NCBI GenBank assembly: GCA_033442325.1
Contig: JAWQFM010000025.1
Coordinates: 343,623-407,622 of the forward strand
DNA from: Salpingoeca rosetta
Taxonomy: Eukaryota > Protista > Choanoflagellata
DNA: 64,000 bases
Reading direction: 5' to 3'
A model generated the notes under the pieces. It was given only the letters and a program-made list of their open reading frames with translations, was not told the origin of the DNA and did no database searches. Each line of letters begins with the position of its first letter. Positions within the stretch are counted from its first letter, which is position 1. A program made the position numbers and the translations under genes. Of this stretch, positions 7,118 through 10,100 are shown one piece after another.

Positions 7118-10100
7118 GCTCAACAACTGCCAGCTCAGGGGTGACAGACTGCAGGCCCTTCTCGATGCACTCCGCGGCAAAACCACCGTTCAATCCATCA
7201 AGTAATGCTGAGCGTTTTGCGATGTGTATTTGGGATACATACACGTGGACATGTCACAAGTGTGTTGCCACCGTCACCCATCAACCATGAACGCTGCTGG
7301 CCCACTCACATGCTTGCAGGCTCTCCTACAACGACCTGGGTCCTGACGGCATGGAAGTGCTTGCTCCAGCGCTCTCCCAACTCAAATCCCTCACATCCCT
7401 TGAGTACGTTTGGCGGTGTATCTGGCGTACATGGAAACTCAGAAATGAGCACCGCCCCCACACAAACACACACACGCACACACACACACACACACACACA
7501 CACACACACACACACACACACACACACACACACACACACACACACACACACACACACACACACACACACACACGCAATCACCCACCCACTCACTCACTCA
7601 CTCACTCACTCACTCACTCACTCACTCACTCACTCACCCACTCACTCACTCACTCACTCACTCACTCACGCACACTCACTCACTCACTCACGCATGCACA
7701 CACACTCACACACTCACTCACGCACGCACACACACTCACTCACGCACGCACACACACACTCACTCACTCACACACTCTCCCTCGCTCACTCACCCACCCA
7801 CACACTCTCTCCCTCACTCACTCACTCACTCACTCACTCACTCACGCACTCACTCACTCACGCACGCACACATACGTTGCAGAGTGGCCAACGACGACAT
7901 TCATGACGCGGGTGTCACGCACATCACAAGTGCGCTGATGAAACTCCCGGGTCTCACACGCCTCAGGTTTGTCCCCGTGCGTGGTGCTTGTGCTGCTTTG
8001 CATCATCGTGTTGCTGACCTGCAAGCGCGTTACCTCCTCTTGCCACATATCCATACCCTGGTGCCTCACACGCTTCCTCAACCCGCTCGCTCGCGCGTTG
8101 ATGCGTATCCAATCAAACGCCCACAGTTTGGATGGTGCTGGCTTATCTGATGCAGGGCTGGAAACCCTGGCAGCGGCACTCCCATATCTACCAGCGTTGA
8201 CACACCTGAGGTGCGTGCCTGCATGCACTAATTGATGCGGCAAATTTGGCTGTGACCATTTCGCTTTGCGCCCATATACACTTCTGAACACACACACACA
8301 CACACACACACACACACGCGCACACACACACACACACACACACACACACACACACACACACACACACACACACACGCATTATAGCATTATGGGTACACTT
8401 GTCCCACACGCACGCCTTTACCACGACTCACAATGCATGTCACGTTACATCTGCTTCGCTCGCAGTCTGACCAAGAACATATTTGGTGATCGTGGCGCGA
8501 CGGCCCTTGCGCACGCTGTCAAGCAGCTGCCATCGCTCTGCGTCTTGCGGTACGGTGTTGCTGCATCACTTAATGGTGTCTGTGTCTGCCTGCCTGCCTC
8601 TGTGTGTGTGTGTGTGTGTGTGCATGTGCGTGTCTGTCTGTCTGTCTGTCTGCATGTGTAGATGGTCGTTTCTGACACTTCACATCTGTTGTGCTTATAA
8701 CTTGGTAGGCTGAGAAACAACAAAGTGGCACAGCAAGGTGCAGCGGCACTGGCCGAAACGTTGCGCACCTCCAAGTCTCTCAATACCCTCGAGTGCGTCT
8801 GCTGGTGCAGCTGTCCTTTGATGTTGTTGTATCCCCTTTCGCCTTTGTGCCACCAACACACACACACACACACACACACACACACACACACACACACACA
8901 CACACACACACACACACACACACANNNNNNNNNNNNNNNNNNNNNNNNNNNNNNNNNNNNNNNNNNNNNNNNNNNNNNNNNNNNNNNNNNNNNNNNNNNN
9001 NNNNNNNNNNNNNNNNNNNNNNNNNNNNNNNNNNNNNNNNNNNNNNNNNNNNNNNNNNNNNNNNNNNNNNNNNNNNNNNNNNNNNNNNNNNNNNNNNNNN
9101 NNNNNNNNNNNNNNNNNNNNNNNNNNNNNNNNNNNNNNNNNNNNNNNNNNNNNNNNNNNNNNNNNNNNNNNNNNNNNNNNNNNNNNNNNNNNNNNNNNNN
9201 NNNNNNNNNNNNNNNNNNNNNNNNNNNNNNNNNNNNNNNNNNNNNNNNNNNNNNNNNNNNNNNNNNNNNNNNNNNNNNNNNNNNNNNNNNNNNNNNNNNN
9301 NNNNNNNNNNNNNNNNNNNNNNNNNNNNNNNNNNNNNNNNNNNNNNNNNNNNNNNNNNNNNNNNNNNNNNNNNNNNNNNNNNNNNNNNNNNNNNNNNNNN
9401 NNNNNNNNNNNNNNNNNNNNNNNNNNNNNNNNNNNNNNNNNNNNNNNNNNNNNNNNNNNNNNNNNNNNNNNNNNNNNNNNNNNNNNNNNNNNNNNNNNNN
9501 NNNNNNNNNNNNNNNNNNNNNNNNNNNNNNNNNNNNNNNNNNNNNNNNNNNNNNNNNNNNNNNNNNNNNNNNNNNNNNNNNNNNNNNNNNNNNNNNNNNN
9601 NNNNNNNNNNNNNNNNNNNNNNNNNNNNNNNNNNNNNNNNNNNNNNNNNNNNNNNNNNNNNNNNNNNNNNNNNNNNNNNNNNNNNNNNNNNNNNNNNNNN
9701 NNNNNNNNNNNNNNNNNNNNNNNNNNNNNNNNNNNNNNNNNNNNNNNNNNNNNNNNNNNNNNNNNNNNNNNNNNNNNNNNNNNNNNNNNNNNNNNNNNNN
9801 NNNNNNNNNNNNNNNNNNNNNNNNNNNNNNNNNNNNNNNNNNNNNNNNNNNNNNNNNNNNNNNNNNNNNNNNNNNNNNNNNNNNNNNNNNNNNNNNNNNN
9901 NNNNNATCGGCAAGACAACGATGATCAGGTCACTGCCGGGCAAAACCGGGTACATCCAGCATCTCATCTACCACGTGATGCAGCCTGCCAACGAGCCAGA
10001 CCGCGCCGAGGAGCGTACACCAGGGATCAAGGTGTGCGATATGGTCATCAGGGACAGGGGCAGCGGTGAAGCTGATGAGGTGGCATCCCTTCGCGTGTAT

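Follow-up and report, generated by a model that had tools for sequence, protein, structure and literature searches.

Six single-repeat LRR exons in Salpingoeca rosetta: probably an old array in a Roc-COR-PARP gene family that diversifies

Can a domain built from exchangeable exons give a choanoflagellate protein a recognition surface that is easily changed? The question is raised by a 64,000-nucleotide (nt) stretch of the Salpingoeca rosetta genome (assembly GCA_033442325.1, contig JAWQFM010000025.1, positions 343,623 to 407,622 of the forward strand), which we call the window. It contains six exons of 84 nt, each encoding one leucine-rich repeat (LRR), upstream of the Roc-COR-PARP gene PTSG_09169. 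A preliminary description of the sequence saw in them a modular, diversifiable recognition surface for the Roco-PARP protein. Our own reading is that the six exons likely form most of the N-terminal LRR domain, of the ribonuclease inhibitor (RI) type, of one gene that continues across an assembly gap into PTSG_09169, and that this array is old and probably spliced constitutively.

Six exons and their probable gene

The six exons lie on the forward strand between positions 7118 and 8792 of the window.

7118-7201, + strand: LRR exon 1 of the visible array, a degenerate first repeat; 84 nt, phase 2-2
7320-7403, + strand: LRR exon 2; 84 nt, phase 2-2; Pfam LRR_6 E=0.009 for the exon alone
7883-7966, + strand: LRR exon 3; 84 nt, phase 2-2
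8127-8210, + strand: LRR exon 4; 84 nt, phase 2-2
8466-8549, + strand: LRR exon 5; 84 nt, phase 2-2
8709-8792, + strand: LRR exon 6; 84 nt, phase 2-2

AG stands directly before every exon, in most cases behind a pyrimidine-rich tract, and GT directly after it (GTAATG, GTACGT, GTTTGT, GTGCGT, GTACGG and GTGCGT, in exon order). When the exons are joined, only the frame at offset 1 is open. The first base of every exon ends a codon and the last two bases start one, which is phase 2 on both sides. An exon thus holds 27 whole codons and one split codon, or one 28-amino-acid (aa) repeat. Exact length, AG/GT flanks, phase and the one-repeat-per-exon layout had all been claimed before; they hold at all six intervals, and both peptides quoted in the preliminary description are reproduced exactly.

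The repeats follow the pattern L-x-x-N-x-(L/I)-G-x-x-G-a-x-x-L-a-x-x-L-x-x-x-x-x-L-x-x-L, with scaffold positions 1, 10, 14, 18, 24 and 27 conserved. Six consecutive 28-aa units show the LxxLxLxxNxL motif and the amphipathic helix GxxxLxxxL of the RI type. Within the LxL core of the beta strand, it is always the codon for the middle x that the intron interrupts (six of six window exons and 44 of 44 exons in paralogs). We compared the joined 167-aa peptide by local BLASTP with proteins retrieved during the analysis. Over 162 aa it is 36% identical to an NLRC3-like protein of Acropora millepora (92 bits), and over 167 aa 33% identical to a bat NLRC3 (70 bits). The match of the six exons to LRRs is far beyond chance. 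Single exons are nearly blank in Pfam, with no match outside exon 2, because the exon border cuts the LRR_6 profile; the paralog PTSG_10355 reaches 66.6 bits with LRR_6. On these motifs and alignments, we classify the six exons as RI-type (NLRC3-like, Pfam LRR_6) LRR cassettes. A scan of the 64-kb window for further LRR exons found none.

The array is enclosed by two assembly gaps. Beyond the second gap follow the exons of PTSG_09169.

6440-6987: assembly gap of 548 N, which probably hides exon 1 with the start codon
8925-9905: assembly gap of 981 N, which probably hides the cap 84-nt LRR exon, a 90-99-nt exon and the first ~115 nt of the Roc exon
9906-10723, + strand: visible part of a large exon, Roc GTPase and start of COR (Pfam Roc 29.8 bits, cut-off 27; exact mapping of PTSG_09169)
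10921-11539, + strand: COR exon (Pfam COR-A 28.7 bits, below the curated cut-off of 35.3; exon mapping)
11912-13039, + strand: last exon, with a linker, the PARP-type catalytic domain and the stop codon (Pfam PARP 37.1 bits; exon mapping)

A HMMER search with the Roc exon returned the identical 849-aa protein PTSG_09169 and the 57% identical 1170-aa protein PTSG_13043. Their genes lie on supercontigs GL832983.1 and GL832987.1, respectively, both of assembly GCA_000188695.1. Window coordinates equal those of the PTSG_09169 locus (L002) plus 3920. Roc is followed directly by COR, the arrangement by which ROCO proteins are recognized, and the full PTSG_09169 protein carries the precomputed domains PF08477 and PF16095.

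To which gene do the LRR exons belong? PTSG_09169 has at least six paralogs in S. rosetta, which makes at least seven LRR-Roc-COR-PARP genes in all. We mapped five complete paralogs exactly onto their loci (PTSG_13043, PTSG_08728, PTSG_09285, PTSG_10355 and PTSG_09099). All five share one plan: exon 1, then 6-11 phase 2-2 exons of 84 nt, an exon of 90-99 nt, a large exon with a linker and Roc, a COR exon and a last exon with PARP. The COR exon measures ~600 nt and is split into 376 + 108 nt in PTSG_09099. The downstream intron positions of the five coincide with those of PTSG_09169. The numbers of 84-nt exons below are counts of exons present in the DNA by locus scan, not counts from the public models.

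PTSG_13043: 7 exons of 84 nt
PTSG_08728: 10 exons of 84 nt
PTSG_09285: 10 exons of 84 nt
PTSG_10355: 6 exons of 84 nt, plus a gap
PTSG_09099: 11 exons of 84 nt
Window gene (PTSG_09169): at least 6 exons of 84 nt

Because five complete paralogs share this plan, the LRR exons of the window very probably belong to the Roco-PARP gene, as the preliminary description had proposed. The exact exon mapping places the LRRs N-terminal to Roc in the same polypeptide in the five paralogs, and the same very probably applies to the window gene. That the LRR exons and PTSG_09169 are one gene, joined across the run of N, we regard as highly probable.

The spacing of the paralogs suggests what the two gaps hide. 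In paralogs exon 1 is 125-185 nt long, ends in phase 2 and lies 178-307 nt upstream of the first 84-nt exon; this spacing puts exon 1 of the window gene inside the gap at 6440-6987. A search of the assembled upstream DNA (5001-7117) for exon-1-like sequence gave no credible match. On the other side of the array, the penultimate 84-nt exon of the paralogs ends 658-967 nt before the IGK codon of the P-loop. In the window, the distance from the last visible LRR exon to the IGK codon is 1113 nt including the gap. Hence there is room for a cap LRR exon, an exon of ninety-odd nt and the first ~115 nt of the Roc exon. Directly after the gap at 8925-9905, the sequence picks up in frame in the middle of the P-loop.

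Old and young arrays in one family

Has the window array changed recently? The six exons are 30-50% identical to each other in nucleotide sequence (11-44% in protein) and at most 58% identical to any paralog exon. Their introns measure 118-479 nt and are mutually unrelated. In the exon tree, the window exons form long branches without resolved position. Exon 7118-7201, for example, has its best match within PTSG_13043 in the first 84-nt exon of that gene, at 30% aa identity, and the tree gives no support for positional homology: the exon sits on a long branch with cap exons. With exons this diverged and introns unrelated, there is no trace of recent duplication, swapping or shuffling of LRR exons at the window locus. 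The array appears to be old and diverged, and its symmetric exons are best read as an inherited scaffold.

Three paralogs tell a different story. Within PTSG_08728, PTSG_09285 and PTSG_09099, the internal exons are 85-98% identical, and the introns between them are 75-100% identical. Homologous introns imply that these arrays grew, or stay alike, by duplication or exchange of exon-plus-intron units at the DNA level. The unit is ~270-290 nt long in the young arrays, and two exon types alternate in PTSG_09099. The three genes have 10-11 copies, within a family range of 6-11, and have gained or exchanged exons recently.

The ends of the arrays behave differently from their interior. Among the three paralogs the first and cap exons are 87-92% identical in nucleotide sequence, a figure that drops to 61-75% in the more divergent paralogs. 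The exon tree groups first and cap exons into clades supported at 100/99 and 91/82, and the internal exons of PTSG_09099 into one of their own (99/91). Judged by this tree, first and cap exons are positional orthologs between paralogs, and internal exons amplify within genes. The pattern matches that of a classic tandem array evolving by unequal crossing-over.

The changes accumulate on the surface of the repeat. Among the 25 internal exons of the three young arrays, the variable positions are 2, 3, 5, 8, 9, 24-26 and 28, a set chosen after seeing the data. Five beta-strand x positions (25, 26, 28, 2 and 3) were chosen a priori. At these five, the pairwise ratio of non-synonymous to synonymous divergence (dN/dS) is 1.71, compared to 0.50 for the other 23 codons, as estimated by the Nei-Gojobori method on short repeats that may be undergoing conversion. 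The non-synonymous divergence of the beta-strand set is reached by only 3 of 20000 random five-codon sets. An excess of change at LRR surface residues, named earlier as a check on the idea of a diversifiable surface, is thus present in the three young paralog arrays.

Hence, that idea has to be divided. It stands for the family, where three paralogs duplicate cassettes and vary their beta-strand residues; it is not supported for the window gene, with its diverged exons and unrelated introns. As judged from the paralog sequences, the cassettes are dynamic at the family level, and the S. rosetta family diversifies through them. PTSG_09169 is also the outlier in its downstream part. Its Roc-COR-PARP region is 54-60% identical to that of all other paralogs, compared to 81% between PTSG_08728 and PTSG_09285, which makes it the most divergent paralog of the family by sequence identity.

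How can both kinds of array arise from one layout? We propose that one 28-aa repeat per 84-nt phase-2 exon is a family-wide inheritance. The layout would be the trace left by arrays that grew as exon-plus-intron units were duplicated in tandem through unequal recombination. In the protein, the LRR domain may sense a ligand or keep the molecule auto-inhibited, Roc-COR would act as a nucleotide-dependent switch, and the PARP-type ADP-ribosyltransferase domain would be the effector.

Alternative explanations

Several observations weigh against one gene with an old, constitutive array. Exon 1 and the cap exon of the window gene are absent from the assembly. The public annotation has the LRR exons as a separate gene. 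The protein collection yielded no transcript-derived S. rosetta protein that bridges the gap at 8925-9905. COR-A on its single exon stays under the curated Pfam cut-off (28.7 vs 35.3 bits). Finally, the sensor-switch-effector mechanism is drawn from the order of the domains.

Might the LRR exons then be a small LRR-only gene, and PTSG_09169 an LRR-less Roc-COR-PARP protein? The public models say so. They place a 118-aa gene on 7351-8713, over the LRR exons, and let the 849-aa PTSG_09169 begin at 9921. The paralog model PTSG_08520 also lacks LRRs, and a related protein in ENA (P0003) is a Roc-COR protein with an N-terminus of only 43 aa. However, the models themselves betray their origin. We could rebuild the 118-aa model exactly: it opens at a Met inside exon 2, runs through exons 3-5, uses an AG at 8660/8661 and stops at 8713. 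This AG lies 47 nt upstream of the true exon 6 acceptor and shifts the frame. The 118-aa model is an artefact of the assembly gap. Position 9921, in turn, is the first Met past the 981 N and falls inside the P-loop. PTSG_08520 sits at the end of its supercontig and so is truncated by the assembly. With the LRR array inside the same gene in all five complete paralogs, we consider a separate LRR gene very unlikely. Even less credible is that the array is decaying, either as a relic no longer under selection or as the front end of a pseudogene. Its repeats are the most degenerate of the family (the N and the second G of the motif are missing from exon 1, and in exon 4 the N is replaced by G), and its branches in the exon tree are long. 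Yet in all six exons the frame is open, the splice sites are canonical and the hydrophobic residues of the scaffold (positions 1, 14, 18, 24 and 27) are kept. The downstream frame of 849 aa is intact and expressed, with values of ~3-33 in eight conditions (PMC4054682 Additional file 12). In the same file, PTSG_09169 is among the genes upregulated in thecate cells.

A third alternative keeps the gene intact and makes the array a putative combinatorial generator, in which exon skipping produces LRR domains of different length and surface. The arithmetic is favourable. The exons end in AA, GA, AG, AG, CG and GA (exons 1-6), any subset of them keeps the frame, and no new junction creates a stop codon. 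In this sense, the earlier statement that skipping, duplication or swapping of exons leaves the frame intact is true. The split codon encodes a variable beta-strand position, and hence a skip would also alter a surface residue. Precedents for exon skipping exist in human NLRP3 (PMC6642158) and in Ectocarpus ROCO genes (PMC11378527). Furthermore, two public models leave out intact, open 84-nt exons flanked by AG/GT.

L003:2988-4180 (PTSG_08728): five skipped intact open 84-nt exons in the public model
L006:3168-4125 (PTSG_09099): four skipped intact open 84-nt exons in the public model

However, the last of the skipped exons has the same 3' end as the exon that precedes the skip, over 23 nt in PTSG_08728 and 28 nt in PTSG_09099. 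Refinement of the S. rosetta models drew on transcripts assembled de novo from short reads (PASA/Inchworm; PMC4054682). Given identical ends and this kind of assembly, a collapse of repeats is as likely as skipping. We therefore do not count the two models as evidence of exon skipping. Symmetric exons, moreover, are what tandem exon duplication is expected to leave behind, whether or not the exons are skipped. Exon skipping at the window locus seems unlikely to us, if less so than a separate gene or decay. The simplest reading is that every window exon is a constitutive part of one fixed LRR horseshoe.

The introns were also described as loaded with CA/CACT microsatellites. The repeats are there:

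7459-7872: compound (CA)n/(CACT)n microsatellite of 414 nt that fills intron 2 (Tandem Repeats Finder, TRF)
8288-8375: (AC)n tract in intron 4
8856-8924: (AC)n tract after exon 6

They are, however, not a special feature of the LRR introns, and we rejected them as such. Across the whole window we count 95 CA/GT runs with 8 or more units, or 1.5 per kb, compared to 2.6 per kb at this locus. Five of the six N gaps of the window adjoin simple repeats (four CA/GT, and one CCA trinucleotide run at 21467-21862). CA microsatellites belong to the genome at large, where they cause assembly gaps, and are not specific to this locus.

Two intron-poor C2H2 zinc-finger genes lie just downstream of the Roco-PARP gene on the + strand, at 13910-15385 and 18795-21185. 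In the first, about ten fingers follow one another in tandem, joined by TGEKPYKC linkers (Pfam zf-H2C2_2, 250 bits).

Known relatives and biological meaning

The architecture of one repeat per exon is already known, not new. The two precedents named in the preliminary description hold. In most human NOD and NLRC genes, each LRR of 28 aa has an exon to itself, the exons strictly preserve the frame, and the exon border is always at the same place in the beta sheet (PMC6642158). The LRR exons of brown-algal LRR-Roc-COR genes measure 72 bp, hold a single LRR and are described as phase 2; alternative splicing, exon shuffling and positive selection on residues of the concave face are reported for these genes (PMC3341825, PMC11378527).

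How does the S. rosetta family compare to these systems? It shares with NOD/NLRC genes the single 28-aa RI-type LRR in a frame-preserving 84-nt exon and the fixed border in the beta strand (PMC6642158, where the NLRC intron phase is not given). It differs in that the LRRs are N-terminal to Roc-COR and PARP, whereas those of NLRC proteins are C-terminal to a NACHT ATPase, and in that the host of the window gene is a choanoflagellate. With the brown-algal ROCO genes, it has in common the order LRR-Roc-COR, one LRR per exon, phase 2, exon numbers that vary between paralogs, positive selection on concave-face residues and a proposed role as immune receptors. In contrast to the S. rosetta exons, the algal exons measure 72 bp and encode repeats of 23-24 aa that are not of the RI type, and their COR has no effector domain behind it. 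Alternative splicing has been documented in the algae. In S. rosetta, recent exon turnover is confined to paralogs of the window gene. The ribonuclease inhibitor and NLRP genes, finally, have the same LRR class, modular exons and borders in the beta strand (PMC6642158), but their exons of 171 bp hold two repeats (28 + 29 aa) and not a single 28-aa repeat. By its domain and exon make-up, the S. rosetta family combines the algal ROCO context with the RI-type 84-nt cassette of animal NLRC genes and adds a PARP-type effector.

Outside S. rosetta, the nearest Roc-COR relatives (P0007, P0016 and P0019; ~30-35% identity) carry a TIR domain where the S. rosetta family has PARP. In a representative search, their layouts were TIR-LRR-Roc-COR, LRR-Roc-COR-TIR and Ank-Roc-COR-TIR. 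A TIR domain in the position of PARP fits a sensor-switch-effector protein, without being proof of one.

The same type of LRR is also widespread in corals, Mortierella-like fungi, dinoflagellates, diatoms and intronless, prokaryote-style NACHT-LRR reading frames. Two of the latter, L008:301-5778 and L009:301-5472, are a Death-NACHT-LRR and an Ig-NACHT-LRR open reading frame without introns, one on a metagenome contig (ENA), the other in GCA_012263305.1, which resembles a metagenome-assembled genome. Their RI-type LRRs are 47-48% identical to the LRR domain of an S. rosetta paralog.

Our literature search found no paper that names PTSG_09169 or its paralogs in the main text, and none of the papers containing both 'ROCO' and 'choanoflagellate' treats the S. 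rosetta LRR-Roc-COR-PARP family. In the supplementary files searched, PTSG_09168 has no entry. The PTSG_09169, PTSG_08728 and PTSG_09099 models are mis-annotated, with LRR exons missing or skipped. They need correction before functional work on the family begins.

Choanoflagellates are the sister group of animals. To our knowledge, few candidate pathogen sensors are known from them. An NLRC-style LRR cassette is present in S. rosetta, joined to a Roc-COR switch and a PARP effector. Conceivably, though we lean against it, the whole family consists of germline-diversifying immune receptors. Unequal recombination would multiply and exchange the cassettes, and alternative splicing might add to this, so that the ligand-binding face varies; PARP would be the output. 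The 84-nt phase-2 cassette would then be an ancestral module that animal NLRC-type receptors later coupled to NACHT. The interest of the locus lies mainly in the dynamics of its family in a close relative of animals, and in the re-annotation that it needs. The family offers a genetically tractable system for asking whether modular LRR exons are older than animal NLRs, and whether they are used for diversification.

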